Shown: positions 1 to 37,945 of the stretch, piece by piece
Position numbering within the stretch: the stretch's first letter is position 1
How the letters are laid out: each line of letters begins with the position of its first letter
Translations under genes and position numbers: made by a program
NCBI GenBank assembly: GCA_019828565.1
Contig: JAHDYR010000005.1
Span: forward strand, 1,741,408 to 1,805,407
Reading direction: 5' to 3'
From: Carpediemonas membranifera BICM
Taxonomy: Eukaryota > Protista > Fornicata
Length of the DNA: 64,000 nucleotides
Notes under the pieces: generated by a model
Database searches by the model: none
What the model was told of the DNA's origin: nothing
Seen by the model: only the letters and a program-made list of their open reading frames with translations

Positions 1-1253
1 AATGGCTCTCGATTATGGATGATTACGGGCTCCCGCATGCCAATCTCATCACTCGTCTGGAAATGCGCATTTTTGGGCACGGAACACCAGCTGCACCAGC
101 TGCTTCCGGACCGGTCTGTGCACCTAGACGAGGGCCCTGTTTACCGTTGAAGGCGCCGAAGAGTGGCCTAGGACCAAGGACGAACTCTATGAGATGGAGG
201 CCAAAAAGCCTCAGAAACAACTCACAAAGTACCATAGAGACGCCTGGACAGTCCAGCACCGCCCATCAACGCCGTCTGACTTCAACTTGGACCGCAATGC
301 GGCCACTCAGGCCCTGAACGACTCCTCCCAGCGCGCTGCCCCGGCGGCTGGAATTCTCCGGCAAGAGGCCGCACTCACCCCAATTGAGCTAGAATCGAAG
401 CCTGTTGGCTCAATATTTGTCCCAATTGCCAGGGCACACCTGGATGTCGCCCCGTTCGAAGAGTGGCCCGAGACTTGCCCCCTGTGTCAGGCCCAGCGCT
501 GCACCTGGCAGCATGCCCTCTCGTGCCCACACACCAAGGGAACCGCCCACACCGAGCGTCACAACCATGTTAGAGACGCTGTGAGCGCCGTGTTGACCGA
601 CGACGACGTTAGAGGTCGACCCATGGCCCGTTGCCAGGCCGAGGTCGCGCTCACCTCTCGTCACCCCCGCTACCAGCAGGCCGATACCGAAGCGCCCAGA
701 CGCAAGGGTGGCCGACCTCATGGTGGCAGGCGAGAGAGACGTGGTCGGGAACCGTGTCCACGAGGAAGTCTATGTCGACTTCGTGGTCAGCCTGCACCCG
801 CGGGAGGCTGAGCTAGAGAAGCTCCGCGAGTACCGCAACTGGCAGGTCACCTTCGTGCCTGCTGCCTGCACGGTTCTGGGCGAGACTGAGTCCCGTCTGA
901 CCGAGTGCTGGGTCGCCCGCCTCTGTGCCGCGATTCGCAGGCCGGCCCTCGTGGGCGCCATCCGTGACCGGGTATTCTGGTCCATCTGGGCGGACAACCA
1001 GACCGTCTGGTCGGACTATGTCTCCCAGTGCAAGGCCCGTTGGGCCGAGCACCACCAATAATCTGCCCTCCCCACAAAATGCCGGAGTCGCGACTCGGCT
1101 GACTCGGCCACTCTAGGCTGCGTCGTCCCCGAGCCCCCCTGCGCCTCCCGCCCCATCGCCGCATCGCACAACAAGCTCCCTGCCCCTGCGCGAGAGTAGT
1201 TGCTCGAAATTCCGCGGAGTCGCGTGTCGTTCGGACAACCTGGGAAAGTAAAT
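1..1253 (+). mobile_element. Unit U0, 3' part only (body type Z, same as U2); CDS ends at 1061
   Basis: Near-identical to 8880-10129; encodes the CCHC knuckle and RLE, ending WAEHHQ*; several single-base indels. Confidence 0.9.
1084..1253 (+). repeat. About 170-bp 3' block shared by all units regardless of body type
   Basis: Starts at the palindrome GAGTCGCGACTC (1085-1096) and ends GGGAAAGTAAAT; recurs almost unchanged before each junction and before the intact tRNA-Glu. Confidence 0.9.
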
Positions 1254-1266
1254 TCGGCCATGGTAT
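1254..1266 (+). repeat. Duplicated tRNA-Glu nt 1-13 (TCGGCCATGGTAT), minimal target-site duplication; also at 5895, 10130, 14522, 19261, 23854, 28498 and 33053
   Basis: Exact match to 37792-37804; the junction copies continue CCAGAGG (element 5' end) whereas the tRNA continues AGCTGG. Confidence 0.92.
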
Positions 1267-4200
1267 CCAGAGGAAAGTTGCTCGATTCGCCGCCGCAAGG
1301 CGACGAATCCTGCCATACATCCGATGAAGGACCTGGTACGTCTATTGACAAGCGATTAGCGCTGTTCGCTGCTCTTCTGCGGTGGATTAACGATTTCCAT
1401 CCATCCAGCTCGAAGAACTCTTGGCCGAAGGATACTGAGGCCTTTATTGAGATCTGCATGAACAAAGAACGTCTATTGAGCCTTATTTCGGATTACAAGC
1501 GTTTCTTCACGGTGAGCAACTTGGTTTGGATAACCAACTACGTTCACGCGGCGACAAATCGCTTCGGCCCCGGCCACAAGGTGAAAGCTTCCCGCCGCGA
1601 CGATCACGTCGCAAATGCTGTCGCCATTCTGCACGCTGCAGCCACTGATCAGGCGTTCACATCAACGCTCACCATCGAACGTGCGAACGAGGCTCTTGAG
1701 CGTATGATCGAGCACGCCATCGACCCAGTGAAAGCGAGAAGGATGAACCTCCTTCAGACTGTCCGAGGCCCTCAGAGGACGACGTCTGTAACCGCCTTGG
1801 TGAAGCGGGTCCAGCATGCGCCCCGCCCAGCCAGCCCACCGAATGCGGGCATCGCCCGCGAGTATGCGAGGGCCGATGCCTTCGCCCGACGCCAGGGTGA
1901 CCGGCCCCCGAGCCCCACCCCCTGCCGATACTGCCCTCACCGACTCCGCTGCCGCCCTAACTGGGCCGCAGCCTGCAGCCACACAGCAGGGAGACCGGCC
2001 CCCGAGCCCCACCCCTGCCGATACTGCCCTCACCGACTCCGCTGTCGCCCCTAACTGGGCCGCAGCCTGCAGCCACACAGCAGGGAGACCGGCCCCCGAG
2101 CCCCACCCCTGCCGATACTGCCCTCACCGACTCCGCTGCCGCCCTAACTGGGCCGCAGCCCGCAGCCGCCCCGCAGGGTGACAGGCCCCCGAGCCCCACC
2201 CCTGCCGATGCTGCCCCCACCGACTCCGCTGCCGCCCTAACTGGGCCGCAGCCCGCTGCCGCCCCGCAGGGTGACAGGCCCCCGAGCCCCACCCCTGCCG
2301 ATGCTGCCCCCACCGACTCCGCTGCCGCCCTAACTGGGCCGCAGCCCGCTGCCGCCCCGCAGGGTGACAGGCCCACGCGCCAGACCCCCGCCCAGGTTGC
2401 CCCCCACCCAGCCAGAGGAGAGGAACATCGACGACACCGCAGTGTCCGAGTTCCTCTCCCTGGCGGGCGTCGAAGGCGGGGAAGGGGAGAGAGCTGAGCC
2501 AGAGACCGGGCACGAAGCCCGTGGTGACTCAGCCAACCCTCCCCTTCGCCCGCCGCCGCAGGCAAGCCAAGGCCCTGAACCACGTACATTTGTGTACACA
2601 GGACCTCCTGGCGCTCTCAACCAGATCACGGAGGCGCACCCTGGGCCAGCATCATCCACGCCTACCCAGGGGTGGCTGAGCCTGCCAAGCTGGATCGACT
2701 CCGGCATAGGTTCACCGCAAACATCCCGACCCACCTGGTCGAGTCTCATTGGGGCTCGGCCGAGCAGGTAAGGTCCACACTCACGACAGCAGTCCGGGTC
2801 GGAGAAGTGTCCGGCGGGCAGAATGGCGTCCACAGGATGTCACGCGAACGCTGGACACAGCTTCTCGAGGGCCTCTTCGCGGACGAGCCGGACAGGCGGC
2901 CACCCTACAGCTTCCCCAAAGGGTTCAGGCAGTTCACGCCGAGGTTTGTGTTCTTCATGAGAGAGGCATGCGGTCTTCCGCCGGACCCTAGTGCTGAGGC
3001 CCCGCCCCATGCCGGGCCCAGCCAGCCCCCACGGAGACCGAGAGCAGCGCTCCTGCCCCTGCCGCCGGCCGACCCTCTCGCGGGCGACCTGCCGATCGAG
3101 CTGTCATATCTGCCTCACCCCGCGGAAGCCGGACGCATCGGCCGGGCGAAGCCCTCACGGAAGGCTGCCGCGGGATTCGTGAACGGGCTGATCCGGCTGC
3201 TCGTGACCCTGGCGAACGCGCCGCAGAACCGGAAGCGGGAGGCGCTAGCCGCCGTCCTTCGGCACGCGCGGACAGTATATCGCCCTGGGAAGAAGGGGAT
3301 CTCCCTCCGCACCCGCTCCCCAGAGCGAGCTGCATACTCGAAGGCCGCCGCCGGGTATTACTCCAGCGCCATGAAGGTCCTGCTCTCTGAGGAGATGACA
3401 CTCACGCCGGGTCAGATCGACCAGAAGCTGGAGGAGATGCAGGCCGCCCCGCTGAGAGATCCCCAGACGCCGGCTCTCACACGCCGCGCCGACGCGCTCA
3501 CGTCCTTTGAGGTCACCTTCGAGGCCGTAGACGAGGCGCTGGGGAAGATGAGAGCGGACTCGGCCCCCGGCCCATCCGGGCTGAGCTTCTTGCATCTGAA
3601 ACTCGCTCATCGACTCCGGAAGGGCCAGTTGGTGCAGGCACTCCTGCCCCTTGTGCGCGACATCATTGCCGGCGAGGAGTACACGGGTATCCTCGCTCAC
3701 GCACGGCTCATCGCACTGCCGAAGGGCGAAGATCGGGTCAGACCCATCGCCATGGGCGAGGCGCTCCGGCGCCTGGCCGCGAAGGTCCTCGCCTCGGCCG
3801 TCTCGTCGCGTCTCCGTAATGACGGCGTCTGCCCTGAGCAGTACGGGCTCGGCGAGAGCTGCGGCCTGGACGTTATGACCGCGAAAATTGCGGAAGCGTA
3901 CGACGAAGGGCTCAAGGTCTGTGCTGTTGACATGACTAACGCCTACGGAACCGTGTCCCGCGCCCACCTCCGTGTGGTGCTCGAGGCGCACGCCCCAGCC
4001 GCCCTCCCCTATTTCTCCACCATGTATGGCGAGGGCAAGCTGCTGACCCCGACCGGGCACGTCATAGCCAGCCGAGAGGGCATCCACCAGGGGGACCCCC
4101 TGTCCCCAGCCCTCTTCACGCTGGCTATGACGCCCTCCTCGGCAGCCTCCGGTCGCAACTTCCCAGTACGACCATCCTCGGCTACCAGGACGACGTGTAC

Positions 4201-5702
4201 GGGCTGCTGCCCCGGCAGGCAGACCAGCGGACGATCGATACATTCTACGCGCGTGTGGAGGCGGCGTGTGGAGCCGTCGGTATGCGGGTGAACCGACTGA
4301 AGTGCCTCGTCCTGGCGAAGACGGGGACACTGGGCCAAAAAAAGCGGACGGGTGCTCGGTATCCCCGTAGGCGACGACGCGGGCGTTGCCAACGCTGTGG
4401 ACGCGGCCTTCTCGCGCATGGAGGACGCGCTCGTGCGGGTGGCCGAGATGACCGAGGCAGTGGGGCCGAAAGCGGCCTCGGTGGCGGTCAATCTGATCAG
4501 GTCTTGCGTTCTTCCGATGCCTTCGGCAATCTTTCGCAACGTGAGCCCAATTGGCCACGAATGCCGCACAAAAAGCCTGGAGCGGAAGCTGAGAGCTGCC
4601 ATCGCACGCATCCTTCAGGTATCCGACGTCACAAAGATACCCGAAGAGCGTCTAGCGCTCGATTTCGCCGACTACGGGCTCCGTATCCCTCTTCCGTCGC
4701 TCATCTGGAAGTGTGCATTTTTGGGCGCAGCCCACCAGCTGCACGCCCTAGGCATCACCCGGGACATGGAGGCGGCGCTGTTCTCTCCAGAAGAGTGCCA
4801 GGAGTGGCCCAAAACCATCCAGGAACTGTTTAGCATCGAGGCTGAAAAGCCGCAGAAGACACTCACTACGATGCTTGCAAAAGCCTGGACGGCCAAGTAC
4901 CGCCCCAAGACACCCGCCGACTTCGGCCTAGACCCCGAGGAGGTCTCCCAGGGCCTCTCTGACTGCAGCTCCCTCGAGGCCCCCGCCGCCGGACTCCTCC
5001 GCAAAGAAGCCGCGCTGAGCCCCCTCGACCTCGAGCAGACCTCCTGCGACAGCGTGTTCGTCCCCGTCACCCGGGCGCACCTCAACATCGCCCCATTCCG
5101 CGAGATGCCGGTCACCTGCCCCCTCTGTGGCCAGCAGGACATCACGTGGCGCCACGCCCTCGGCTGCTCCTACCTGAAGGATGGCGCGACCAACGCACGC
5201 CACGACAGCATCAAGATGGCTGTGCACGATCTCGTGACCCAGGACGACCTCCGCGGGCGCCCCATCCCCCACTGCAAGCCCGAGTTCGATCTGCTCGACA
5301 CCCACCCTAGGTTCCGCGTCACGAGCGCCGACGCCCCCACACACAAGCGGGCCGACCTCAAGGTCTGGGGCGAGCGCGACGTGGTCGGAAACGCGGTACA
5401 CGATGATGTATACGTGGACTTCTACTGCGGTCTTCACCCCCGCGACGCCGAGACCGAGAAGACCCGGGAGTACGCCAACTGGGACGTCACCTTCCTGGTC
5501 GCCGCCACCACCGTCGGCGGCGCCACGGGAGTCCCGCCTGACCGCGGACTGGGCGGTGCAGTTTTGCGACGCCATTGCACGGCCGCACCTGGCGGGAACC
5601 ATGCGCGACACGGCCTTCCTGAAGGCCTGGGAGGGCAACCTCAGCATCTGGAGTGACTATGTCAGCCAGTGCAAGGCCCGCTGGGCCGAGCTCAACCTAT
5701 AA
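1260..5702 (+). CDS. Retrotransposon RT-CCHC-RLE polyprotein (U1), interrupted by single-base indels
   Basis: Track ORFs 1200-2054, 2364-2771, 2672-4291, 4352-5656 and the 3' end of 5403-5702 reconstruct one frame by comparison with U5 and U7. Confidence 0.8.
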
Positions 5703-5894
5703 CCAGGTCCCTGCACAGAAATCTGGAGTCGCGACTCGGCTGACTTGGCCACTCTAGGCTGCGTCGTCCCCGAGCCCCCCTGCGCCTCCCGCCCCATCGC
5801 CGCATCGCATAACGCATCCCCTGCCCCTGCGCGAGAGTAGTTGCTCGAAATTCCGCGGAGTCGCGTGTCGTTCGGACAACCTGGGAAAGTAAAT
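1267..5894 (+). mobile_element. Unit U1: N-module alpha + about 5 linker repeats + body X
   Basis: N-terminus TSIDKRLALFAALLRW; body HRFTANIPTH...WAELNL*. Confidence 0.92.
1892..2358 (+). repeat. 93-bp tandem repeat (31 aa, QGDRPPSPTPADAAPTDSAAALTGPQPAAAP), about 5 copies in U1; 1-6 copies in other units
   Basis: Repeat starts near 1892, 1987, 2081, 2174 and 2267; approximate copy numbers U2 1, U3 2, U4 6, U5 4, U6 5, U7 4, U8 6. Confidence 0.9.
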
Positions 5895-5900
5895 TCGGCC

Positions 5901-8900
5901 ATGGTATCCAGAGGAAAGTTGCTCGATTCGCCGCCGCAAGGCGACGAATCCTGCCATACATCCGATGACGGACCAGGTGACACGAATTACCTGAAACTAG
6001 CGCTGTTCGCTGCGCTCCTGCGCGTAATGGACGAAATTCGTCAGCACTACCCGAAAGGCTCGTGGCCGAAGAACGCTGAGGCCTTCATCGAGGTTTGTAT
6101 GAACAAAGATCGTTTATTGCGCCTTGTGACGGACAACAAACGCTTCTTCACGATCAACAACCTTTCTTTGATCACGGACTACGTTCATGCGGCCACAAAC
6201 CGCTTCGGGCCAGGCCATAAGCCGAAGGCATCCCGCCGTGATGACCACATCGCCAATGCCACTTCACTTCTCCACGCCGCAGCCACCAACCAGGTGTTCA
6301 CTGCTACGATCTCGATTGATCGTGCCAACGAGGCCCTCGAGCGCGTGATACGGGGCAGAAGGACCGATGAGCAGCTCATGAGGGAGCACCCTCGTCCGCT
6401 CCGCCCGTCCGAGATCGCCGCTCGCCGCGCCAAGACCGGGCGTCAGTCATACGCCCAACTGATCAGCCGTGTCGAGGAGGCCCGCCCGGCAAGCCCTGCG
6501 CGAGACCGCACTGCCTTCCTCGAGGCAGAAGCATACGCGTGTCGCGTAGCTGCTGGCCGCGCAGACCGTCAACAGCAGGGTGATAGGCCCCCGAGCCCCA
6601 CCCCTGCCGATGCTGCCCCCACCGACTCCGCTGTCGCCCTAACTGGGCCGCAGTCCGCAGCCGCCCCGCAGGGAGACCGGCCCACGCGCCAGACCCCCGC
6701 CCAGGTTGCCCCCACCCAGCCAGAGGAGAGGAACATCGACGACACCGCAGTGTCCGAGTTCCTCTCCCTGGCGGGCGTCGAAGGCGGGGAAGGGGAGAGA
6801 GCTGAGCCAGAGACCGAGCACGAAGCCCGTGGTGACTCAGCCAACTCCCCCCTTCGCCCGCCGCCGCAGGTTGACCCCGCCCACCGGCTCACAGGGTGGC
6901 TCGACCGCACGACCATCGACGCTGTTCGCCGCAGCTTTGACGCACATGTACCGCGGGAAGACAGAGACATGTGGTCGACCAACGACCAGGTCGTCGCGAC
7001 GCTGACGTCTGTCGACGCCGTCCGCTGGCTCTCCCGGGGGCAAAATGGCCAGAACCGCATGTCCAGAGCACGCTGGACGGCTCTCCTCGAGCAGGTCTTT
7101 GCGGCTCACCCGAGGAACCGGCCTTCGTATGCGTTCCCGCAAGGCCTGAAGTCGTTCGCACCCAGGTTCGTGGCGTTCATGAGGGAAGGGTTGGGTATGC
7201 CAGTCGACCCCGCTCTCCCAGCTGTCCCGCAGCCAAGGACGGCCCAGCCAGCCAGAAGAAGGCTCACTGCTCCCCGCCCGCAGCCGGAGACCATCCTTCC
7301 AGAGCTCCCAGAGGACCTCAAGTTCCTCCCCTCCCCGACGGAGGCCGGCAGGATTGGGAAGTCGAAGCCTTCAAGGAAGGGTGCGGTCTCATTCGTGAAG
7401 GGTCTCATCAACCTGTTGGAGGCCCTGAACGAGGTGCCTGCCCAGCAGAAACGGCGTGGCCTTATTGCCATCATGACCCATGGTCAGACGGTGTACAAGC
7501 CCGCCAAGAAGCAGGTGACACTGCGGACCCGGACCAAGGAGCGCTCGGCCTTCACCAAGGCCTCGGCCGGCTACTACTCCAGTGGCCTGAAGATCCTCCT
7601 GTCTGAGGACATGGACCTCAGCCCGACCGAGGTTGACGAGAAGCTGGTGGAGCTGCAGGCCGAGCCAATGGCAGACCCACGTCTCTTCCACCCACAGCAA
7701 CGGGCGGGTGCGCTGGAGTCATATGAGGTCACCCCGGAGTCTGTGACATGGGCCCTGGACAGGCTCAAAGCAGACTCGGCACCGGGACCCTCGGGCCTGA
7801 GTTTCCTTCACTTGAAGCTGGCCTACCGCCTACGCAAACACAAGTTTGTTGCTGCTGTCACGCCTCTGATCAACGACATCATCAACGGGGAGCCCTACAC
7901 TGAGATCCTGTCGCACTCGAGGCTCGTTGCCCTGCCTAAGGGAGACTCCAAGGTCCGGCCCATTGCAATGGGCGAGAGCCTGAGACGCCTCGCAGGCAAG
8001 GTCCTAGCCCACGATGTCGGGCTGAGGATTATTGGCGATGGTGTGTGCGAGGGGCAGTTCGGACTGGGCGAGAGCTGCGGCCTGGACTGCATGGGTGACA
8101 TTCTGAAGGCAGCGTACGCCGGCGGTGCGCAGCTGTGCGCCGTTGACATGTCCAATGCGTACGGAACCGTCAGTCGGCAGCATCTGTCTGAGGTCGCACA
8201 GGCGTGGGCCCCGGTCTTGCTACCGTACCTGCACACGATGTATGCCGGGGGCAAGATGATCACACCAACAGGCCTTGTCATCCCGTCCCGGGAGGGCATC
8301 CAGCAAGGGGACCCCATATCTCCGCTGCTGTTCACCCTGGCGATGAAGCCGGTCCTGGACCAGATCAGAGGTGAGTTCCAGGAGTGCAGGATGGTCTCCC
8401 TATCAGGACGATGCTTACTTGATCGCGCCAGCGTCCATGCCGGCCTCACGAGTTGATCGGTTCTACGACCGGATGGCTGAGGTTTGTGGCCGCATCGGCA
8501 TGCGCGTGAACACGGCTAAGTGTATGGTGATCAGCGCTGCTGGCTCCCCGGGTGCCATTCAGCGGGTAGTCAACGGTAGAGCCGTTGGAATCCCTGTTGG
8601 TGACGCTCATGGTGAGGCAAGAGCTGTCGATGATGTCTTCTCGGAGATGGAGATGGCGACTGCTCGCGTCGTGGAAATGGTGGAGACTGTAGGGCCTTCT
8701 GCGGCCAGCGTTGCGCTGAATATGATTCGTTCATGCATTCTTGCGATGCCATCCGCAATCTACAGAGCTGTGTCGCCGATTAGGCACGAAAGCAGGACAT
8801 CCCGCTTCGAGCAGATGCTTAGCCGCAGCGTAGAGCACATTCTGCAACTAAGAGATGGTCTGGAAGACAAAACTCGTAGAATGGCTCTCGATTATGGAGA

Positions 8901-9937
8901 TTACGGGCTCCGCATGCCAATCCCATCACTCGTCTGGAAATGCGCATTTTTGGGCACGGAACACCAGCTGCACCAGCTGCTTCCGGACCGGTCTGTGCAC
9001 CTAGACGAGGCCCTGTTTACCGTTGAAGGCGCCGAAGAGTGGCCTAGGACCAAGGACGAACTCTATGAGATGGAGGCCAAAAAGCCTCAGAAACAACTCA
9101 CAAAGTACCATAGAGACGCCTGGACAGTCCAGCACCGCCCATCAACGCCGTCTGACTTCAACTTGGACCGCAATGCGGCCACTCAGGCCCTGAACGACTC
9201 CTCCCAGCGCGCTGCCCCGGCGGCTGGAATTCTCCGGCAAGAGGCCGCACTCACCCCAATTGAGCTAGAATCGAAGCCTGTTGGCTCAATATTTGTCCCA
9301 ATTGCCAGGGCACACCTGGATGTCGCCCCGTTCGAAGAGTGGCCCGAGACTTGCCCCCTGTGTCAGGCCCAGCGCTGCACCTGGCAGCATGCCCTCTCGT
9401 GCCCACACACCAAGGGAACCGCCCACACCGAGCGTCACAACCATGTTAGAGACGCTGTGAGCGCCGTGTTGACCGACGACGACGTTAGAGGTCGACCCAT
9501 GGCCCGTTGCCAGGCCGAGGTCGCGCTCACCTCTCGTCACCCCCGCTACCAGCAGGCCGATACCGAAGCGCCCAGACGCAAGGTGGCCGACCCTCATGGT
9601 GGCAGGCGAGAGAGACGTGGTCGGGAACCGTGTCCACGAGGAAGTCTATGTCGACTTCGTGGTCAGCCTGCACCCGCGGGAGGCTGAGCTAGAGAAGCTC
9701 CGCGAGTACCGCAACTGGCAGGTCACCTTCGTGCCTGCTGCCTGCACGGTTCTGGGCGAGACTGAGTCCCGTCTGACCGAGTGCTGGGTCGCCCGCCTCT
9801 GTGCCGCGATTCGCAGGCCGGCCCTCGTGGGCGCCATCCGTGACCGGGTATTCTGGTCCATCTGGGCGGACAACCAGACCGTCTGGTCGGACTATGTCTC
9901 CCAGTGCAAGGCCCGTTGGGCCGAGCACCACCAATAA
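5901..9937 (+). CDS. Retrotransposon polyprotein (U2), about 1340 aa after correcting two +1 indels (near 8400 and 9591)
   Basis: Frame is open from ATG 5901 through the N-module, linker and RT up to just before YQDD (track ORF 5841-8456), which shows the single-ORF architecture. Confidence 0.85.
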
Positions 9938-10129
9938 TCTGCCCTCCCCACAAAATGCCGGAGTCGCGACTCGGCTGACTCGGCCACTCTAGGCTGCGTC
10001 GTCCCCGAGCCCCCCTGCGCCTCCCGCCCCATCGCCGCATCGCACAACGCATCCCCTGCCCCTGCGCGAGAGTAGTTGCTCGAAATTCCGCGGAGTCGCG
10101 TGTCGTTCGGACAACCTGGGAAAGTAAAT
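5908..10129 (+). mobile_element. Unit U2: N-module beta + 1 linker repeat + body Z
   Basis: N-terminus DTNYLKLALFAALLRV; body VDPAHRLTGWLDR...WAEHHQ*. Confidence 0.92.
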
Positions 10130-10135
10130 TCGGCC

Positions 10136-14331: not shown

Positions 14332-14521
14332 TCGCCCTCACCAGAAATGCCGGAGTCGCGACTCGGCTGACTCGGCCACTCTAGGCTGCGTCGTCCCCGA
14401 GCCCCCCTGCGCCTCCCGCCCCATCGCCGCATCGCATAACGCATCCCCTGCCCCTGCGCGAGAGTAGTTGCTCGAAATTCCGCGGAGTCGCGTGTCGTTC
14501 GGACAACCTGGGAAAGTAAAT
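10143..14521 (+). mobile_element. Unit U3: N-module beta + about 2 linker repeats + body W (X-related mosaic)
   Basis: Body begins as X, diverges after about 11545 (FREFTPRLVYFMREACGLRQDP) and ends WAEHHP*. Confidence 0.92.
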
Positions 14522-14527
14522 TCGGCC

Positions 14528-19068: not shown

Positions 19069-19260
19069 TCTGCCCTCCCCACAAAATGCCGGAGTCGCGA
19101 CTCGGCTGACTCGGCCACTCTAGGCTGCGTCGTCCCCGAGCCCCCCTGCGCCTCCCGCCCCATCGCCGCATCGCATAACGCATCCCCTGCCCCTGCGCGA
19201 GAGTAGTTGCTCGAAATTCCGCGGAGTCGCGTGTCGTTCGGACAACCTGGGAAAGTAAAT
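14535..19260 (+). mobile_element. Unit U4: N-module alpha + about 6 linker repeats + body Y
   Basis: Body DALVAAHQQVAPGGWLDL...WAEHHQ*; near-identical to U6 and U8. Confidence 0.92.
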
Positions 19261-19266
19261 TCGGCC

Positions 19267-23661: not shown

Positions 23662-23853
23662 CCAGGTCCCTGCACAGAAATCTGGAGTCGCGACTCGGCT
23701 GACTTGGCCACTCTAGGCTGCGTCGTCCCCGAGCCCCCCTGCGCCTCCCGCCCCATCGCCGCATCGCATAACGCATCCCCTGCCCCTGCGCGAGAGTAGT
23801 TGCTCGAAATTCCGCGGAGTCGCGTGTCGTTCGGACAACCTGGGAAAGTAAAT
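19274..23853 (+). mobile_element. Unit U5: N-module beta + about 4 linker repeats + body X
   Basis: Beta N-terminus joined to the same X body as U1 and U7. Confidence 0.92.
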
Positions 23854-23859
23854 TCGGCC

Positions 23860-26800: not shown

Positions 26801-28306
26801 GACACACCAAGCACACGTATTGATGCCTTCTTTGCTCGATGCGCCGCACTGGCGAACGGCGTGGGTATGAAGGTCAACGCGGCCAAGTGTGTTGTCATCT
26901 CGAAGTTCGGGGTTTCGGGGAACATCCGGCGCGCTGTGTGCGGAAAGGCGGTCGGTGTCCCCATTGGGGATGCTGATGGCGAGGCTGCGGTAGTCGATGA
27001 AGTGTTCTGTGGCATGGAAGCGGCCATCGAAAGAATCGTTGCGATGGTGGAAGCAGTTGGTCCTGTTTCGGCCGGTGTTGCCATCAATATGCTGAGATCG
27101 TGTGTTTTGGCAATGCCTTCGGCAATCTATCGGTCTGTCTCTCCAGTTCCCCACCAATCCAGGACAATTCAGCTGGAAAGGAAAATCCTTCGAGCGATTG
27201 GCGACATCCTGCAGAAAATGGGCAGATTGCAAGTTCCTACGCAGCGTATTGCGCTTGATTACGATGATTTCGGTCTTCGTATGCCTTTGCCATCGCTCGT
27301 GTGGAAGTGTGCATTTTTGGGCACAACACACCAACTGCACACACTACGCCCCAACAGGACCGTCCCTCACCTTGACGAGTCGCTTTTCAAGCTCGATGGC
27401 AGCGCTGTATGGCCTGAAAGTGTCGAGGCTCTCTATGAGATCGAGGCCATGAAGCCTCAGAAGAAGCTAACCAAATTCCATAGAGATGCATGGGTGCTTG
27501 AGTTCCGCCCCAATCAGCCTGCTGACTTCGAGTTATGCCCAGATGCCGCCGTTCAGGCTCTACCGGAGTCAGCTGGCCGCCCCGCCCCCGCTGCCGGAGC
27601 ACTCCGCAAGGAGGCCTCCCTCACGCCCTTGGAGCTCGATCCGGCTCCACTGGGGTCCCTCTTTGTTCCCATTGTGCGGGCGCACCTCGACACGGCCCCA
27701 TTCGAGGAGCTGCCTGAGGTCTGCCCGCTGTGCAACGCGCAAGCCATCACGTGGAAGCACGCCCTCTCGTGCCCCAACCAGACCGGAGGTGCCGACGATG
27801 CCCGCCATGACCACATTCGGGACGTTGTACAGGCCGTTGTCAGTGACGATGACATATCTGGCCGTCCAATGGCTGACGTGAAGCCCGAGCGCTGGCTCAC
27901 CCGGGCCCACCCCAGGTTCCGGCAGGTGTCTGCCAGAGCGCCCACCCGCAAGAGGGCCGACCTCAAGGTCTCTGGTGAGCGTGACGTGGTTGGCAACGTG
28001 GTCCATGACGACGTCTATGTCGATTTTTACTGTGGAGTCAACCCGCGCGCGGCTGAGCTGGAGAAGGCCAGGGAGTACCAGAACTGGGCTATTACATTTA
28101 TCCCAGCCGCCACCACCGTCCTGGGTGAGACTGAGTCCCGCATCACCGAGTGCTGGGCCGTGAAGCTCTGTGAGGCGATCGCCCGCCCCCACCTGGTCCC
28201 CAGGGTCAAGCACCGCACCTTCCTCTCGGTCTGGGCAGACAACATCCGCGTCTGGTCGGACTATGTCTCCCAGTGCAAGGCCCGTTGGGCCGAGCACCAC
28301 CAATAA
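23860..28306 (+). CDS. Retrotransposon polyprotein (U6), indels in homopolymer runs
   Basis: Track ORFs 23800-24687, 24590-25252, 25321-26742 and 26528-28306. Confidence 0.82.
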
Positions 28307-28497
28307 TCTGCCCTCCCCACAAAATGCCGGAGTCGCGACTCGGCTGACTCGGCCACTCTAGGCTGCGTCGTCCCCGAGCCCCCTGCGCCTCCCGCCCCAT
28401 CGCCGCATCGCATAACGCATCCCCTGCCCCTGCGCGAGAGTAGTTGCTCGAAATTCCGCGGAGTCGCGTGTCGTTCGGACAACCTGGGAAAGTAAAT
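23867..28497 (+). mobile_element. Unit U6: N-module alpha + about 5 linker repeats + body Y
   Basis: Same body as U4 and U8. Confidence 0.92.
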
Positions 28498-28503
28498 TCG
28501 GCC

Positions 28504-31500
28504 ATGGTATCCAGAGGAAAGTTGCTCGATTCGCCGCCGCAAGGCGACGAATCCTGCCATACATCCGATGAAGGACCTGGTACGTCTATTGACAAGCGAT
28601 TAGCGCTGTTCGCTGCTCTTCTGCGGTGGATTAACGATTTCCATCCCTCCAGCTCGAAGAACTCTTGGCCGAAGGATACTGAGGCCTTTATTGAGATCTG
28701 CATGAACAAAGAACGTCTATTGAGCCTTATTTCGGATTACAAGCGTTTCTTCACGGTGAGCAACTTGGTTTGGATAACCAACTACGTTCACGCGGCGACA
28801 AATCGCTTCGGCCCCGGCCACAAGGTGAAAGCTTCCCGCCGCGACGATCACGTCGCAAATGCTGTCGCCATTCTGCACGCTGCAGCCACTGATCAGGCGT
28901 TCACATCAACGCTCACCATCGAACGTGCGAACGAGGCTCTTGAGCGTATGATCGAGCACGCCATCGACCCAGTGAAAGCGAGAAGGATGAACCTCCTTCA
29001 GACTGTCCGAGGCCCTCAGAGGACGACGTCTGTAACCGCCTTGGTGAAGCGGGTCCAGCATGCGCCCCGCCCAGCCAGCCCACCGAATGCGGGCATCGCC
29101 CGCGAGTATGCGAGGGCCGATGCCTTCGCCCGACGCCAGGGAGACCGGCCCCCGAGCCCCACCCCCTGCCGATGCTGCCCCTCACCGACTCCGCTGTCGC
29201 CCTAACTGGGCCGCAGCCCGCAGCCGCCCCGCAGGGTGACAGGCCCCGAGCCCCACCCCCTGCCGATGCTGCCCCTCACCGACTCCGCTGTCGCCCTAAC
29301 TGGGCCGCAGCCCGCAGCCGCCCAGCGGGATGACCGGCCCCCCGAGCCCCACCCCCTGCCCAGGCTGCCCCCACCGACTCCGCTGCCGCCCTAACTGGGC
29401 CGCAGCCCGCAGCCGCCCCAGCAGGGATGACCGGCCCCGAGCCCCACCCCTGCCCAGGCTGCCCCCACCGACTCCGCTGCCGCCCCTAACTGGGCCGCAG
29501 CCCGCAGCCGCCCCGCAGGGTGACAGGCCCACGCGCCAGACCCCCGCCCAGGTTGCCCCCACCCAGCCAGAGGAGAGGAACATCGACGACACCGCAGTGT
29601 CCGAGTTCCTCTCCCTGGCGGGCGTCGAAGGCGGGGAAGGGGAGAGAGCTGAGTCAGAGACCGGGCACGAAGCCCGTGGTGACTCAGCCAACCCTCCCCT
29701 TCGCCCGCCGCCGCAGGCAAGCCAAGGCCCTGAACCACGTACATTTGTGTACACAGGACCTCCTGGCGCTCTTAACCAGATCACGGAGGCGCACCCTGGG
29801 CCAGCATCATCCACGCCTACCCAGGGGTGGCTGAGCCTTGCCAAGCTGGATCGACTCCGGCATAGGTTCACCGCAAACATCCCGACCCACCTGGTCGAGT
29901 CTCATTGGGGCTCGGCCGAGCAGGTAAGGTCCACACTCACGACAGCAGTCCGGGTCGGAGAAGTGTCCGGCGGGCAGAATGGCGTCCACAGGATGTCACG
30001 TGAACGCTGGACACAGCTTCTCGAGGGCCTCTTCGCGGACGAGCCGGACAGGCGGCCACCCTACAGCTTCCCCAAAGGGTTCAGGCAGTTCACGCCGAGG
30101 TTTGTGTTCTTCATGAGAGAGGCATGCGGTCTTCCGCCGGACCCTAGTGCTGAGGCCCCGCCCCATGCCGGGCCCAGCCAGCCCCCACGGAGACCGAGAG
30201 CAGCGCTCCTGCCCCTGCCGCCGGCCGACCCTCTCGCGGGCGACCTGCCGATCGAGCTGTCATATCTGCCTCACCCCGCGGAAGCCGGACGCATCGGCCG
30301 GGCGAAGCCCTCACGGAAGGCTGCCGCGGGATTCGTGAACGGGCTGATCCGGCTGCTCGTGACCCTGGCGAACGCGCCGCAGAACCGGAAGCGGGAGGCG
30401 CTAGCCGCCGTCCTTCGGCACGCGCGGACAGTATATCGCCCTGGGAAGAAGGGGATCTCCCTCCGCACCCGCTCCCCAGAGCGAGCTGCATACTCGAAGG
30501 CCGCCGCCGGGTATTACTCCAGCGCCATGAAGGTCCTGCTCTCTGAGGAGATGACACTCACGCCGGGTCAGATCGACCAGAAGCTGGAGGAGATGCAGGC
30601 CGCCCCGCTGAGAGATCCCCAGACGCCGGCTCTCACACGCCGCGCCGACGCGCTCACGTCCTTTGAGGTCACCTTCGAGGGCCGTAGACGAGGCGCTGGG
30701 GAAGATGAGAGCGGACTCGGCCCCCGGCCCATCCGGGCTGAGCTTCTTGCATCTGAAACTCGCTCATCGACTCCGGAAGGGCCAGTTGGTGCAGGCACTC
30801 CTGCCCCTTGTGCGCGACATCATTGCCGGCGAGGAGTACACGGGTATCCTCGCTCACGCACGGCTCATCGCACTGCCGAAGGGCGAAGATCGGGTCAGAC
30901 CCATCGCCATGGGCGAGGCGCTCCGGCGCCTGGCCGCGAAGGTCCTCGCCTCGGCCGTCTCGTCGCGTCTCCGTAATGACGGCGTCTGCCCTGAGCAGTA
31001 CGGGCTCGGCGAGAGCTGCGGCCTGGACGTTATGACCGCGAAAATTGCGGAAGCGTACGACGAAGGGCTCAAGGTCTGTGCTGTTGACATGACTAACGCC
31101 TACGGAACCGTGTCCCGCGCCCACCTCCGTGTGGTGCTCGAGGCGCACGCCCCAGCCGCCCTCCCCTATTTCTCCACCATGTATGGCGAGGGCAAGCTGC
31201 TGACCCCGACCGGGCACGTCATAGCCAGCCGAGAGGGCATCCACCAGGGGGACCCCCTGTCCCCAGCCCTCTTCACGCTGGCTATGACGCCCCTCCTCGG
31301 CAGCCTCCGGTCGCAACTTCCCAGTACGACCATCCTCGGCTACCAGGACGACGTGTACGGGCTGCTGCCCCGGCAGGCAGACCAGCGGACGATCGATACA
31401 TTCTACGCGCGTGTGGAGGCGGCGTGTGGAGCCGTCGGTATGCGGGTGAACCGACTGAAGTGCCTCGTCCTGGCGAAGACGGGGACACTGGGCCAAAAAA

Positions 31501-32860
31501 AGCGGACGGGTGCTCGGTATCCCCGTAGGCGACGACGCGGGCGTTGCCAACGCTGTGGACGCGGCCTTCTCGCGCATGGAGGACGCGCTCGTGCGGGTGG
31601 CCGAGATGACCGAGGCAGTGGGGCCGAAAGCGGCCTCGGTGGCGGTCAATCTGATCAGGTCTTGCGTTCTTCCGATGCCTTCGGCAATCTTTCGCAACGT
31701 GAGCCCGATTGGCCACGAATGCCGCACAAAAAAGCCTGGAGCGGAAGCTGAGAGCTGCCATCGCACGCATCCTTCAGGTATCCGACGTCACAAAGATACC
31801 CGAAGAGCGTCTAGCGCTCGATTTCGCCGACTACGGGCTCCGTATCCCTCTTCCGTCGCTCATCTGGAAGTGTGCATTTTTGGGCGCAGCCCACCAGCTG
31901 CACGCCCTAGGCATCACCCGGGACATGGAGGCGGCGCTGTTCTCTCCAGAAGAGTGCCAGGAGTGGCCCAAAACCATCCAGGAACTGTTTAGCATCGAGG
32001 CTGAAAAGCCGCAGAAGACACTCACTACGATGCTTGCAAAAGCCTGGACGGCCAAGTACCGCCCCAAGACACCCGCCGACTTCGGCCTAGACCCCGAGGA
32101 GGTCTCCCAGGGCCTCTCTGACTGCAGCTCCCTCGAGGCCCCCGCCGCCGGACTCCTCCGCAAAGAAGCCGCGCTGAGCCCCCTCGACCTCGAGCAGACC
32201 TCCTGCGACAGCGTGTTCGTCCCCGTCACCCGGGCGCACCTCAACATCGCCCCATTCCGCGAGATGCCGGTCACCTGCCCCCTCTGTGGCCAGCAGGACA
32301 TCACGTGGCGCCACGCCCTCGGCTGCTCCTACCTGAAGGATGGCGCGACCAACGCACGCCACGACAGCATCAAGATGGCTGTGCACGATCTCGTGACCCA
32401 GGACGACCTCCGCGGGCGCCCCATCCCCCACTGCAAGCCCGAGTTCGATCTGCTCGACACCCACCCTAGGTTCCGCGTCACGAGCGCCGACGCCCCCACA
32501 CACAAGCGGGCTGACCTCAAGGTCTGGGGCGAGCGCGACGTGGTCGGAAACGTCGTCCACGACGACGTCTACGTCGACTTCTACTGCGGTCTTCACCCCC
32601 GCGACGCCGAGACCGAGAAGACCCGGGAGTACGCCAACTGGGACGTCACCTTCCTGGTCGCCGCCACCACCGTCGGCGGCGCCACGGAGTCCCGCCTGAC
32701 CGCGGACTGGGCGGTGCAGTTTTGCGACGCCATTGCACGGCCGCACCTGGCGGGAACCATGCGCGACACGGCCTTCCTGAAGGCCTGGGAGGGCAACCTC
32801 AGCATCTGGAGTGACTATGTCAGCCAGTGCAAGGCCCGCTGGGCCGAGCTCAACCTATAA
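28504..32860 (+). CDS. Retrotransposon polyprotein (U7), indels in homopolymer runs
   Basis: Track ORFs 28444-29205, 29330-30976, 30663-31751, 31510-31992 and 31709-32860. Confidence 0.82.
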
Positions 32861-33052
32861 CCAGGTCCCTGCACAGAAATCTGGAGTCGCGACTCGGCTG
32901 ACTTGGCCACTCTAGGCTGCGTCGTCCCCGAGCCCCCCTGCGCCTCCCGCCCCATCGCCGCATCGCATAACGCATCCCCTGCCCCTGCGCGAGAGTAGTT
33001 GCTCGAAATTCCGCGGAGTCGCGTGTCGTTCGGACAACCTGGGAAAGTAAAT
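28511..33052 (+). mobile_element. Unit U7: N-module alpha + about 4 linker repeats + body X
   Basis: Same body as U1 and U5. Confidence 0.92.
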
Positions 33053-33058
33053 TCGGCC

Positions 33059-36000
33059 ATGGTATCCAGAGGAAAGTTGCTCGATTCGCCGCCGCAAGGC
33101 GACGAATCCTGCCATACATCCGATGAAGGACCTGGTACGTCTATTGACAAGCGATTAGCGCTGTTCGCTGCTCTTCTGCGGTGGATTAACGATTTCCATC
33201 CCTCCAGCTCGAAGAACTCTTGGCCGAAGGATACTGAGGCCTTTATTGAGATCTGCATGAACAAAGAACGTCTATTGAGCCTTATTTCGGATTACAAGCG
33301 TTTCTTCACGGTGAGCAACTTGGTTTGGATAACCAACTACGTTCACGCGGCGACAAATCGCTTCGGCCCCGGCCACAAGGTGAAAGCTTCCCGCCGCGAC
33401 GATCACGTCGCAAATGCTGTCGCCATTCTGCACGCTGCAGCCACTGATCAGGCGTTCACATCAACGCTCACCATCGAACGTGCGAACGAGGCTCTTGAGC
33501 GTATGATCGAGCACGCCATCGACCCAGTGAAAGCGAGAAGGATGAACCTCCTTCAGACTGTCCGAGGCCCTCAGAGGACGACGTCTGTAACCGCCTTGGT
33601 GAAGCGGGTCCAGCATGCGCCCCGCCCAGCCAGCCCACCGAATGCGGGCATCGCCCGCGAGTATGCGAGGGCCGATGCCTTCGCCCGACGCCAGGGTGAC
33701 CGGCCCCCGAGCCCCACCCCTGCCGATGCTGCCCTCACCGACTCCGCTGTCGCCCTAACTGGGCCGCAGCCCGCAGCCGCCCCGCAGGGTGACAGGCCCA
33801 CGCGCCAGATCCCCGCCCAGGTTGCCCCCACCGACTCCGCTGCCGCCCTAACTGGGCCGCAGCCCGCAGCCGCCCCGCAGGGTGACAGGCCCCCCGAGCC
33901 CCACCCCTGCCCAGGCTGCCCCCACCGACTCCGCTGCCGCCCTAACTGGGCCGCAGCCCGCAGCCGCCCAGCGGGATGACCGGTCTACCGACCCCACCCC
34001 TGCCCAGGCTGCCCCCACCGACTCCGCTGCCGCCCCTAACTGGGCCGCAGCCCGCAGCCGCCCCGCAGGGTGACAGGCCCACGCGCCAGATCCCCGCCCA
34101 GGCTGCCCCCACCGACTCCGCTGCCGCCCACACTGGGCCGCAGCCCGCAGCTGCCCCGCAGGGTGACAGGCCCCCGAGCCCCACCCCTGCCGATGCTGCC
34201 CCCACCGACTCCGCTGCCGCCCTAACTGGGCCGCAGCCCGCAGCCGCCCCGCAGGGTGACAGGCCCACGCGCCAGACCCCCGCCCAGGTTGCCCCCACCC
34301 AGCCAGAGGAGAGGAACATCGACGACACCGCAGTGTCCGAGTTCCTCTCCCTGGCGGGCGTCGAAGGCGGGGAAGGGGAGAGAGCTGAGTCAGAGACCGG
34401 GCACGATGCCCGTGGTGACTCAGCCAACCCTCCCCTTCGCCCGCCGCCGCAGGCAAGCCAAGGCCCTGAACCACGTACATTCGTATACACAGGACCTGAC
34501 GCTCTGGTTGCCGCTCATCAGCAGGTTGCGCCTGGGGGGTGGCTAGACCTTGCCACGATTGATGGGATCCGCCGCACATTCGTTGAACATGTCCCCAGAG
34601 AGGACCGCAGCGGCATGTGGTCCACTAATGACCAAGTCAGATCGACGCTGACGTCAGTCGAGGCCGTCCGCTGGCTCTCCAGGGGGCAGAACGGGCAGAA
34701 CCGCATGTCCAGAGCACGCTGGACGGCTCTCCTCGAGCAGGTCTTTGCGGCTCACCCGAGGAACCGGCCGACGTATGCGTTCCCGCAAGGCCTGAAGTCG
34801 TTCGCACCCAGGTTCGTGGCATTCATCCGCGAGGGACTTGGATTGCCACCTGACCCGGCCATCCCCGCGGTTCCAGGACAGTCGTCGAGTCGACCCACTG
34901 CCCGTCGTGCGCCGTTGGTCCCGGCTCGGCCCCAGGCACAGCCGCACGCAACCTCCTCCCAGCAGCTGCCGGAGGAGCTCCGATTCCTGCCCTCGCCGAC
35001 TGAGGCAGGAAGGATTGGGAAGGCCAAGCCGTCAAAGAAGGGCGCACTGCCGTTCGTGAAGGGCCTGATCAACCGCTTCGTAGCTCTCAACGAGGCTCCC
35101 GCCTCGCGGAAGCGAGCTGCCCTCATTGCTGTCCTACAGCATCCGCGCACGGTGTACAGGCCCTCAAAGGAGCCGGTCGGGCTCAGAAGCCGGACACCTG
35201 AGTTTGCGGCGTATACCAAAGCAGCGGCCGGCTACTATTCGAGTGCGTTGAAGGTGCTCCTTGCGGAAGACCTCACACTGGCCCCGGCTGAAGTTGACGA
35301 GCAGTTGGAGGCGCTGCAGGAGGAGCCGGTGCTCAACCCGACCCTGTTCCACCCACCCAGGATGCCGGGTGCGCTTGAGTCGTTTGAGCTGACAGAGGAG
35401 GTCGTCACGCATGTCCTCGATCGACTGAAGACTGACTCGGCACCTGGGCCATCGGGCCTCAGTTTTCTACATCTGAAGCTGGCCTATAGACTGCGGAAAG
35501 GCCAGTTCGTCAGGGCAATAACGCCGCTTTTGCTCGACATCATCAGTGGCGAAAGGTACACTGAGATCCTCTCCCATGCCCGGCTAGTTGCGCTACCGAA
35601 GGGGGCGGGCAACGTGCGCCCCATCGCCATGGGCGAGTGTCTACGCCGCGTGGCCGGGAAGGCTTTGGCCCGCGTGGTTGGCCTGCGCCTTGCCGCGGAC
35701 GGGGTCTGCTCTGGCCAGTATGGACTGGGCGAGCCCTGTGGTCTTGACTGTATGGCTGACCTTCTGGCAGAGAGGTATGCAGCAGGCGACCAGGTATGTG
35801 CCGTCGACATGACTAACGCATATGGAACGGTGTCCAGGCAGCACCTCCGGGACGTCGCAGAGGCCTGGGTTCCCGCCCTGCTGCCGTACCTTGAGGTCAT
35901 GTACCGTCAGGGTCGTCTGATCACCCCTACAGGACTCGTCATTCCGTCCAGGGAAGGGGTACAGCAGGGGGATCCCATCTCTCCTGTCCTCTTCTCCCTG

Positions 36001-37599
36001 GCCATGAAACCTGTGCTAGACCAGCTGCGGTCTGAATTCCCGGACTGCGACCTGGTTGCATACCAGGATGATGCATACCTTGTCGCCCCCCGCGACACAC
36101 CAAGCACACGTATTGATGCCTTCTTTGCTCGATGCGCCGCACTGGCGAACGGCGTGGGTATGAAGGTCAACGCGGCCAAGTGTGTTGTCATCTCGAAGTT
36201 CGGGGTTTCGGGGAACATCCGGCGCGCTGTGTGCGGAAAGGCGGTCGGTGTCCCCATTGGGGATGCTGATGGCGAGGCTGCGGTAGTCGATGAAGTGTTC
36301 TGTGGCATGGAAGCGGCCATCGAAAGAATCGTTGCGATGGTGGAAGCAGTTGGTCCTGTTTCGGCCGGTGTTGCCATCAATATGCTGAGATCGTGTGTTT
36401 TGGCAATGCCTTCGGCAATCTATCGGTCTGTCTCTCCAGTTCCCCACCAATCCAGGACAATTCAGCTGGAAAGGAAAATCCTTCGAGCGATTGGCGACAT
36501 CCTGCAGAAAATGGGCAGATTGCAAGTTCCTACGCAGCGTATTGCGCTTGATTACGATGATTTCGGTCTTCGTATGCCTTTGCCATCGCTCGTGTGGAAG
36601 TGTGCATTTTTGGGCACAACACACCAACTGCACACACTACGCCCCAACAGGACCGTCCCTCACCTTGACGAGTCGCTTTTCAAGCTCGATGGCAGCGCTG
36701 TATGGCCTGAAAGTGTCGAGGCTCTCTATGAGATCGAGGCCATGAAGCCTCAGAAGAAGCTAACCAAATTCCATAGAGATGCATGGGTGCTTGAGTTCCG
36801 CCCCAATCAGCCTGCTGACTTCGAGTTATGCCCAGATGCCGCCGTTCAGGCTCTACCGGAGTCAGCTGGCCGCCCCGCCCCCGCTGCCGGAGCACTCCGC
36901 AAGGAGGCCTCCCTCACGCCCTTGGAGCTCGATCCGGCTCCACTGGGGTCCCTCTTTGTTCCCATTGTGCGGGCGCACCTCGACACGGCCCCATTCGAGG
37001 AGCTGCCTGAGGTCTGCCCGCTGTGCAACGCGCAAGCCATCACGTGGAAGCACGCCCTCTCGTGCCCCAACCAGACCGGAGGTGCCGACGATGCCCGCCA
37101 TGACCACATTCGGGACGTTGTACAGGCCGTTGTCAGTGACGATGACATATCTGGCCGTCCAATGGCTGACGTGAAGCCCGAGCGCTGGCTCACCCGGGCC
37201 CACCCCAGGTTCCGGCAGGTGTCTGCCAGAGCGCCCACCCGCAAGAGGGCCGACCTCAAGGTCTCTGGTGAGCGTGACGTGGTTGGCAACGTGGTCCATG
37301 ACGACGTCTATGTCGATTTTTACTGTGGAGTCAACCCGCGCGCGGCTGAGCTGGAGAAGGCCAGGGAGTACCAGAACTGGGCTATTACATTTATCCCAGC
37401 CGCCACCACCGTCCTGGGTGAGACTGAGTCCCGCATCACCGAGTGCTGGGCCGTGAAGCTCTGTGAGGCGATCGCCCGCCCCCACCTGGTCCCCAGGGTC
37501 AAGCACCGCACCTTCCTCTCGGTCTGGGCAGACAACATCCGCGTCTGGTCGGACTATGTCTCCCAGTGCAAGGCCCGTTGGGCCGAGCACCACCAATAA
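33059..37599 (+). CDS. Retrotransposon polyprotein (U8), about 1510 aa; RT-CCHC-RLE body uninterrupted
   Basis: Track ORF 33976-37599 (1207 aa) has all RT motifs, CPLCNAQAITWKHALSC, RHD, RADL, VYVDF and EKAREY; the only breaks are two extra C in the linker repeats. Confidence 0.9.
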
Positions 37600-37791
37600 T
37601 CTGCCCTCCCCACAAAATGCCGGAGTCGCGACTCGGCTGACTCGGCCACTCTAGGCTGCGTCGTCCCCGAGCCCCCCTGCGCCTCCCGCCCCATCGCCGC
37701 ATCGCATAACGCATCCCCTGCCCCCGCGCGAGAGTAGTTGCTCGAAATTCCGCGGAGTCGCGTGTCGTTCGGACAACCTGGGAAAGTAAAT
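33066..37791 (+). mobile_element. Unit U8 (tRNA-proximal): N-module alpha + about 6 linker repeats + body Y
   Basis: Its 3' block runs directly into the intact tRNA-Glu. Confidence 0.93.
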
Positions 37792-37864
37792 TCGGCCATG
37801 GTATAGCTGGTTAGAACATAAGACTCTCACTCTTAAGACCCGGGTTCGAGTCCCGGTGGCCGAG
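37792..37864 (+). tRNA. tRNA-Glu (CTC)
   Basis: Acceptor TCGGCCA/TGGCCGA, D arm with AGCTGGTTA, anticodon stem TAAGA/TCTTA with loop CT-CTC-AC, T arm CCGGG-TTCGAGT-CCCGG. Confidence 0.95.
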
Positions 37865-37945
37865 AATTTATTCAACAATTTCAGTCGTGTCGATCAGTGT
37901 CGATTAGATTTATTTATATCTATCTCAGCTTTAAAAAATTACTTG

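Follow-up and report, generated by a model that had tools for sequence, protein, structure and literature searches.

How can the 5′ end of a tRNA gene be repeated nine times over more than 37 kb and the gene itself remain intact? The question is raised by a 64,000-nucleotide stretch of the Carpediemonas membranifera BICM genome (contig JAHDYR010000005.1, here C6, positions 1,741,408 to 1,805,407 of the forward strand; hereafter the window, whose own positions are used unless a contig is named). Positions 1–37790 of the window form a head-to-tail array of eight full units and one partial unit, with a unit length of 4.2–4.7 kb, and the array closes at an intact tRNA-Glu(CTC) gene. The units very probably belong to a family of retrotransposons that encodes a reverse transcriptase (RT) and a restriction-like endonuclease (RLE) and is specific for tRNA-Glu(CTC) genes, the duplication left by its staggered cut rebuilding the tRNA gene at each insertion and thereby allowing head-to-tail arrays to grow. 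Every full unit opens with a short stub, and the units differ in their 5′ module (of alpha or beta type) and in the RT lineage of their body (A to D). The window starts directly 3′ of a 100-N scaffold gap, and the left end of its array is not assembled.

1–1252, + strand: partial unit U0, a lineage-C element of which the 3′ 1.25 kb stands right of the 100-N gap
1253–5893, + strand: U1, stub, alpha-type 5′ module and lineage-B body; frameshifted
5894–10128, + strand: U2, stub, beta-type 5′ module and lineage-C body; 851 codons open from the stub ATG into the RT
10129–14520, + strand: U3, stub, beta 5′ module and lineage-D body
14521–19259, + strand: U4, lineage A, 99.4% identity to U8
19260–23852, + strand: U5, beta 5′ module and lineage-B body; 1089-amino-acid open reading frame (ORF) at 20231–23500
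23853–28496, + strand: U6, lineage A, 98.7% identity to U8
28497–33051, + strand: U7, alpha 5′ module and lineage-B body
33052–37790, + strand: U8, lineage A, adjoins the tRNA; best-preserved unit of the window
37792–37864, + strand: intact tRNA-Glu(CTC), 61.3 bits against Rfam RF00005; closes the array

The array is set out by a 13-mer, TTCGGCCATGGTA, that occurs nine times in the window, against 0.04 occurrences expected by chance, always on the + strand and at spacings of 4235–4739 bp (starts at 1253, 5894, 10129, 14521, 19260, 23853, 28497, 33052 and 37791). At all eight internal junctions the 13-mer is followed by an identical element 5′ end, TCCAGAGG..., and the last copy, at 37791, opens the intact tRNA-Glu(CTC). 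Alignment of all nine sites reveals at least 100 identical bases 5′ of the 13-mer, ending ...GGGAAAGTAAA. As a preliminary description of the window had noted, the 3′ half of the tRNA occurs a single time in the window, in the gene that closes the array, and poly(A) is absent from all nine junctions. The same description equated the 13-mer at eight junctions with nucleotides 1–13 of tRNA-Glu; the repeat and the element 5′ end behind it are as described, but the register is not: Rfam leaves the leading T outside the tRNA, and the off-target copy presented below assigns it to the element. Rfam places the tRNA at 37792–37864, which yields a perfect 7-bp acceptor stem, and ARAGORN makes it one base longer on each side; it is one of two tRNA genes that the programs find in the window, the other being tRNA-Leu(TAA) at 37946–38027.

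The origin of the stub can be read from a single off-target copy on contig C1 (L021:4759–6765; C1 ~1418758–1420764). This copy, 5′-truncated to 2 kb and 99.8% identical to U2, lies at a non-tRNA site, lacks the stub and is bounded instead by an exact 14-bp direct duplication of the local target, TCGTACATGCAGTG, on both sides. The T of ...GTAAAT precedes the downstream duplicate, and the upstream flank has a G at that base. These features show that the element terminates with ...GTAAAT, that the nicks are 14 bp apart, and that the stub is derived from the target and not from the element. The leading T of the 13-mer is thus the element 3′ end, and the stub proper corresponds to tRNA nucleotides 1–12, or to 1–13 with one ambiguous T. 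The C1 site resembles the tRNA 5′ region at 13/23 positions (P=0.003) and, over a longer stretch, at 21/40 (P=5e-4). The reconstructed empty site restores a frame of 441 open codons, and the insertion is probably a damaging and very recent one that breaks a host gene. Copies at non-tRNA sites that carry the 13-mer internally, the finding that the preliminary description had itself named as contrary to its view, were not encountered, the C1 copy being the only one off target.

The element 3′ end abuts tRNA +1, and the first 12–14 nucleotides of the downstream tRNA are the downstream copy of the duplication. We propose that the endonuclease nicks the bottom strand of the tRNA-Glu(CTC) gene between −1 and +1, that element RNA with the 3′ end ...GUAAAU would be reverse-transcribed from this nick, and that the top strand would then be cut ~14 nucleotides downstream, the bottom strand presumably being the first to be nicked. 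Repair would duplicate tRNA nucleotides 1–12/14 and leave the stub upstream of the element, and the tRNA gene would be rebuilt downstream and would now have the element 3′ untranslated region (UTR) on its 5′ side. As the duplication begins at +1, the gene left downstream would be complete, and because the target survives each insertion, new copies from any of the four lineages could insert again and the arrays would grow. The proposal that staggered cleavage duplicates the tRNA 5′ end had been put forward in the preliminary description, and it is borne out by the 14-bp duplication on C1 and by two true left ends, on C43 and C52, where native flank meets the stub. On C43 the native flank is followed by the stub and a full-length element, and on C52 by tRNA nucleotides 1–14, two extra nucleotides and a 5′-truncated element. 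The left end of an array, which the preliminary description had sought, is thereby defined at these two loci, but that of the window array falls in the 100-N gap.

The same geometry recurs throughout the assembly (24.2 Mb in 69 contigs were searched). The stub joined to an element 5′ end is found 58 times on 11 contigs, so that the genome-wide map called for at the outset comprises ~58 stub-associated units, which amount to roughly 0.26 Mb or ~1% of the 24-Mb genome. All 52 canonical full-length 5′ ends (52/52) and five variants with an additional G (+G) are preceded by the stub, and every 3′ end found is followed by it, with two exceptions; a single 3′ end among some 54 is located at an unrelated site. 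More than 90% of the copies are full length, and the 5′ truncations, at q2256 and q2447, leave the 3′ end invariant. The assembly contains no more than three intact tRNA-Glu(CTC) genes, one each on C6, C11 and C26; all three close arrays (3/3), and because their downstream flanks are unrelated they represent independent loci. The C6 gene is followed at 37865–37880 by just TTT, with the tRNA-Leu 80 bp further on; the copies on C11, C26 and C54 are followed by TTTT. At the fourth locus, on C54, a deletion has removed tRNA nucleotides 1–26 and fused the 3′ part of the tRNA to the interior of an element. A survey of empty against filled genes, as had been suggested, therefore ends with three filled genes, one deleted gene and no empty tRNA-Glu(CTC) gene in the assembly. 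Within a lineage, copies from different contigs hardly differ and their terminal branches are near zero, so that activity is recent.

Insertion specificity is high. Six identical tRNA-Asp(GTC) genes (for example C6:595219–595291) share 19 of their first 23 nucleotides with tRNA-Glu(CTC), and no element adjoins any of the six. Two positions, G9 and C16, are common to the tRNA-Glu target and the C1 off-target site and are absent from tRNA-Asp, which makes them candidate recognition positions.

The protein places the family among the RLE-type, R2-group non-LTR (long terminal repeat) retrotransposons, with an RT, a CCHC motif and an R2-like restriction-like endonuclease predicted from sequence and from a structural model. 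The family also bears the footprints of target-primed reverse transcription (TPRT), namely a 3′ end that does not vary, 5′ truncations of differing extent, a target-site duplication and the absence of LTRs. An intact example on C54 (L014:410–5059) is a single ORF of 1549 amino acids, and in U8 the corresponding frame is split into an N-terminal piece and a 1207-amino-acid ORF by a frameshift at a C-run within 93-bp repeats.

33052–33064, + strand: U8 stub, the preceding element's last T plus tRNA nucleotides 1–12; first in-frame ATG at 33059–33061
33059–33979, + strand: N-terminal part of the U8 ORF, orphan ~210-amino-acid domain followed by repeats; ends at the C-run frameshift within the repeats
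33692–34299, + strand: 93-bp tandem repeats of U8, encoding a Pro-rich 31-amino-acid unit, 6.5 copies; copy number differs among units
33976–37599, + strand: U8 main ORF, 1207 amino acids
~35596–36192, + strand: U8 RT (amino acids 541–739), Pfam RVT_1
36061–36078, + strand: YQDD motif
37015–37065, + strand: CCHC motif
37093–37110, + strand: RHD motif
37243–37323, + strand: KRADL...VYVD motif of the putative restriction-like endonuclease
37600–37791, + strand: U8 3′ UTR, ending ...GGGAAAGTAAAT; no poly(A); ~170 nucleotides nearly invariant in the four lineages

From the N-terminus, the protein comprises a ~210-residue orphan helical domain, the Pro-rich 31-residue repeats, a linker, a tryptophan-rich Myb-like stretch, the RT, the CCHC motif and RHD followed by KRADL...D. 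The RT is matched by Pfam RVT_1 at residues 541–739 (E=3e-14) and contains a YQDD motif. The motifs quoted in the preliminary description (G[IV]P[VI]G, CPLC-x8-H-x3-C, RHD and RADL..D) are all present in the 1207-residue ORF, the first as GVPIG, and alignment A4 shows no variation at the C, C, H, C, H, D and K of the C-terminal motifs. By sequence, the best-matching relatives of solved structure are R2 proteins (phmmer, E=1.5e-6), and an AlphaFold2 model of the C-terminal 428 residues (predicted local distance difference test, pLDDT, 74) retrieves R2 as the top seven Foldseek matches (E 8e-6 to 2e-4), followed by PD-(D/E)XK nucleases. Pfam detects no domain beyond RVT_1 in the 1549-residue ORF, neither APE nor Ulp1. 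The ~830 residues that precede the RT have no Pfam match and show no Cys/His finger pattern (alignment A3). Within them, the N-terminal ~210-residue domain has no Pfam or Atlas match, its AlphaFold2 pLDDT is below 50, and VIA gives a best Z of 7.2 on helical bundles; the W-x19-W-x16-W stretch (34615–34740) has a Myb-like look at pLDDT 70–83, and no fold match was obtained for it. Most units are frameshifted, and because 1-nucleotide indels among 99%-identical copies fall mainly within homopolymer runs, some of the frameshifts may be assembly errors.

Close homologues are few, with nine proteins among 1.8 billion below 1e-30 (Cafeteria, Closterium and metagenomes, all unnamed or hypothetical), and the contigs of the two nearest outside relatives carry no tRNA. 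The best protein match is a hypothetical protein of C. membranifera, and a relative with 36% identity lies on C63 of the assembly. On the contig of the nearest one (GCA_002919055.1, L028:3291–4853), a neighbouring RT gene has a weak Dam methyltransferase match, which recalls a 2026 preprint that reportedly describes retrotransposons with adenine methyltransferases. At the RNA level, Rfam returns nothing but tRNAs in the window at E<=1, and thus no 5′ self-cleaving ribozyme; the fold of the element 5′ region has z=−1.96, and the 3′ UTR, which is nearly invariant, offers one compensatory pair of 52.

Several points weigh against the reading set out above. No age gradient can be measured along the array, as terminal branches are near zero, and growth at the tRNA-adjoining end is presumed. 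On C65, units of one lineage (B or D) stand in runs, for which unequal crossing-over may be the cause. Only two copies, both truncated, show the 14-bp duplication, and full-length copies keep 12–13 nucleotides. At many loci the array breaks off at an N gap or at the end of a contig, so that array sizes and unit counts are uncertain. No fully intact ORF begins at the stub ATG in any of the 36 copies examined. Lastly, expression of the regenerated tRNA is presumed, its function being deduced from the fact that no unoccupied tRNA-Glu(CTC) gene exists.

The alternative that survives best would supplement the tRNA-rebuilding reading, not replace it, and we give it a substantial chance, although not an even one: in full-length copies the stub would be supplied by the element RNA, the transcript starting within the 3′ end of the preceding neighbour and bearing the stub at its own 5′ end, and the end of the cDNA annealing to the matching 5′ part of the target tRNA and copying the junction of the donor. 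Its main attraction lies in the reading frame. The long frame is open from an ATG at tRNA nucleotides 7–9 (context GCCATGG) in all eight window units (8/8) and in 47 of the 52 canonical copies, and this stub ATG is both the first in-frame ATG and the sole one upstream of the conserved coding region. Comparison of alpha with beta modules gives a pN/pS ratio of 0.38 for codons 25–210, consistent with purifying selection; conserved residues start near codon 32, and the next in-frame ATG of the alpha module is codon 67. Translation may therefore start at the stub ATG, so that a translatable RNA should include the stub and transcription must start upstream of the element proper. An RNA-supplied stub would also fit the retention of 14 target nucleotides in both 5′-truncated copies against 12–13 in the 52 or more full-length ones, the share of full-length copies, which is unusual for TPRT without homology, and the homogenisation of the ~260-nucleotide junction region between lineages that differ by 30% elsewhere. 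However, the contrast in retained nucleotides comes from two truncated copies and could be nick wobble, and five copies with the +G 5′ end AGAGGGAAAG (L014:384–410, C15:24815, C43:5326, C54:264250 and C56:41425), linked to three different body lineages, have the stub ATG shifted out of frame, one of them being the only intact 1549-residue ORF seen.

A little more doubtful still is a wider scheme, which we offer tentatively, in which the ORF lacks a start codon and borrows the AUG of tRNA nucleotides 7–9, the promoter or initiator lies in the A/T-rich 3′ end of the preceding element or in the native tRNA flank, as in the 'promoting in tandem' of HeT-A, and the RNA with the stub guides homology-assisted joining of a full-length 5′ end. 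If it were true, an element would land more readily at a tRNA gene that is already occupied than at an empty one, and stacking would be self-reinforcing. Transcription of the element by RNA polymerase III from the tRNA start was considered and is unlikely, as each unit contains 2–8 T4/T5 runs in the sense strand and the stub has neither an A nor a B box. A sequence CTCGA(G/C/A) lies 30–55 nucleotides upstream of two host-gene ATGs in the window (43735–44820, − strand, and 51208, + strand), ~50 nucleotides before native tRNA-Glu genes and, within the element 3′ UTR, at −51; in this small sample it may be a core promoter motif. Two further short matches possibly arise by chance, namely TCGGCCA, the first seven nucleotides of the tRNA, in the invariant 3′ UTR at 37637–37660 (~0.14 expected for a 7-mer) and GGCCGAG at the ORF end, which could pair with the stub.

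We judge it improbable that the arrays go back mainly to a single insertion at each locus, multiplied afterwards by unequal crossing-over or tandem duplication. The runs of similar lineage-B or lineage-D units on C65 are what such a process would leave, and recombination has touched the units, alpha and beta 5′ modules being combined with different bodies at joints in the 93-bp repeats. The UTRs are homogenised as well; the last ~170 and first ~75 nucleotides are almost invariant across lineages, which points to concerted evolution or to strong constraint on the junction region. However, bodies B, C and D each share 55–65% amino acid identity with A, and the interleaved lineages follow one another along the window as C, B, C, D, A, B, A, B, A, with U4, U6 and U8 in lineage A, U1, U5 and U7 in B, U0 and U2 in C and U3 in D. 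Near-identical copies of each lineage occur on different contigs, unit order and spacing differ between arrays at different loci, and insertions at four or more unrelated loci together with one off-target event demonstrate active transposition. The reusable tRNA landing pad of the preliminary description, with several lineages stacked in more than 37 kb, is accordingly what we find, with four interleaved lineages in the window and four unrelated loci occupied.

That the array is an artefact of assembly, with reads from dispersed repeats collapsed or concatenated, is very improbable: there is a 100-N gap at the window start, gaps lie within arrays, several arrays run off contig ends and homopolymer indels suggest long-read errors, but ~58 junctions share one constant register, arrays are continuous with unique flanks, on the left at native ends and on the right at tRNA genes, and a 293-nucleotide contig from an independent run, the sole independent support for any junction, covers 32940–33232 with zero differences. 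The worry about misassembly voiced in the preliminary description is thus eased for that junction but persists for array length.

Retrotransposition into tRNA genes by RLE elements is a known habit, of which this family is a non-destructive variant and not a new kind of element. Members of the NeSL group insert into tRNA-Pro (NeSL-1_TV of Trichomonas vaginalis), tRNA-Arg (LIN15_SM) and tRNA-Glu-TTC (LIN25_SM, planarian) (Kojima & Jurka 2015, PMC4640811); like the Carpediemonas family they are site-specific RLE elements inside tRNA genes and lack poly(A), and Trichomonas is likewise a metamonad. In contrast, their junctions lie within the tRNA body and interrupt the gene, whereas the Carpediemonas family spares it, and the NeSL-group report describes no tRNA regeneration, stacking or target-supplied ATG (PMC4640811). 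The novelty suspected in the preliminary description thus does not extend to tRNA-gene specificity as such, which is already published (PMC4640811), but does extend to regeneration of the target. NeSL-clade proteins carry N-terminal C2H2 zinc fingers (PMC4640811) and often an Ulp1 protease, neither of which was found in the Carpediemonas protein; the sole hint of this clade is a distant relative of P0016 with an Ulp1 domain (PF02902).

The CRE clade (CRE1/CRE2, SLACS and CZAR, in trypanosomatid spliced-leader genes) resembles the Carpediemonas family in being RLE elements whose single target is a small multicopy RNA gene, entered close to its 5′ end, and shares with it a CCHC/RHD/PD..D-type C-terminus and the nick geometry; all CRE elements make target-site duplications, the second nick falling downstream of the first (PMC3636483). 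Their target is the spliced-leader gene or exon, however, whereas that of the Carpediemonas family is tRNA-Glu(CTC), where the duplication starts exactly at gene +1 and the whole gene is rebuilt. As in the present family, R2 inserts by TPRT into a multicopy RNA gene (28S ribosomal DNA, rDNA) at a single conserved position, and several lineages can live side by side in a host. R2 inactivates the rDNA unit that it enters, usually with a small deletion and without stacking, whereas the Carpediemonas family makes a duplication and stacks. R2 also has an N-terminal zinc finger and Myb domain and a 5′ hepatitis delta virus-like ribozyme, against a Myb-like stretch alone and no Rfam ribozyme here. 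HeT-A/TART at Drosophila telomeres and GilM/GilT of Giardia form head-to-tail arrays by repeated end-directed retrotransposition, and HeT-A is transcribed from a promoter within the 3′ end of the element before it, a possible analogy to the start codon borne by the stub; these elements attach to chromosome ends, whereas the Carpediemonas family attaches to a gene and its 3′-end promoter is hypothetical. We found no paper on these Carpediemonas elements. What appears new is the non-destructive geometry, the stacking, the occupation of every locus by four lineages and, possibly, the target-supplied start codon.

A site-specific retrotransposon can, in this manner, settle at all copies of an essential gene and destroy none, as the duplication rebuilds the gene, and this would explain how ~58 copies persist in a handful of tRNA loci. 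The rebuilt gene would be a natural, reusable and non-destructive 'safe harbour' for RNA-templated insertion, of relevance to R2-based gene-insertion tools, and the discrimination between tRNA-Glu and the similar tRNA-Asp provides a compact system for the study of target recognition.

Two other repeats were observed beside the arrays. The first is a young repeat of ~11 kb with ~48-bp terminal inverted repeats and the end ...CAGTATG, of which at least 30 copies are present at 99–100% identity (L004:8879–9898, that is C6:1740286–1741305, ~100 bp before the 100-N gap; L010:6878–7900; and ~30 other places). It is probably a DNA transposon, nested in the retrotransposon arrays on C6 and C35, with a related one on C11. 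It flanks 5′-truncated copies on these three contigs and was considered as their true target or template-switch partner, which its nature as a nested, young transposon-like repeat rules out. The second lies directly right of the tRNA-Leu, where window positions 38530–41247 (− strand) contain a 905-residue ORF with a tyrosine-recombinase (Phage_integrase) domain. Sequence from ~38060 recurs to the right of the C54 tRNA-Glu remnant (L014:8940–9060), and because this integrase-ORF region stands both at the tRNA-Leu and at the C54 remnant, a second, unrelated class of element also adjoins tRNA genes.

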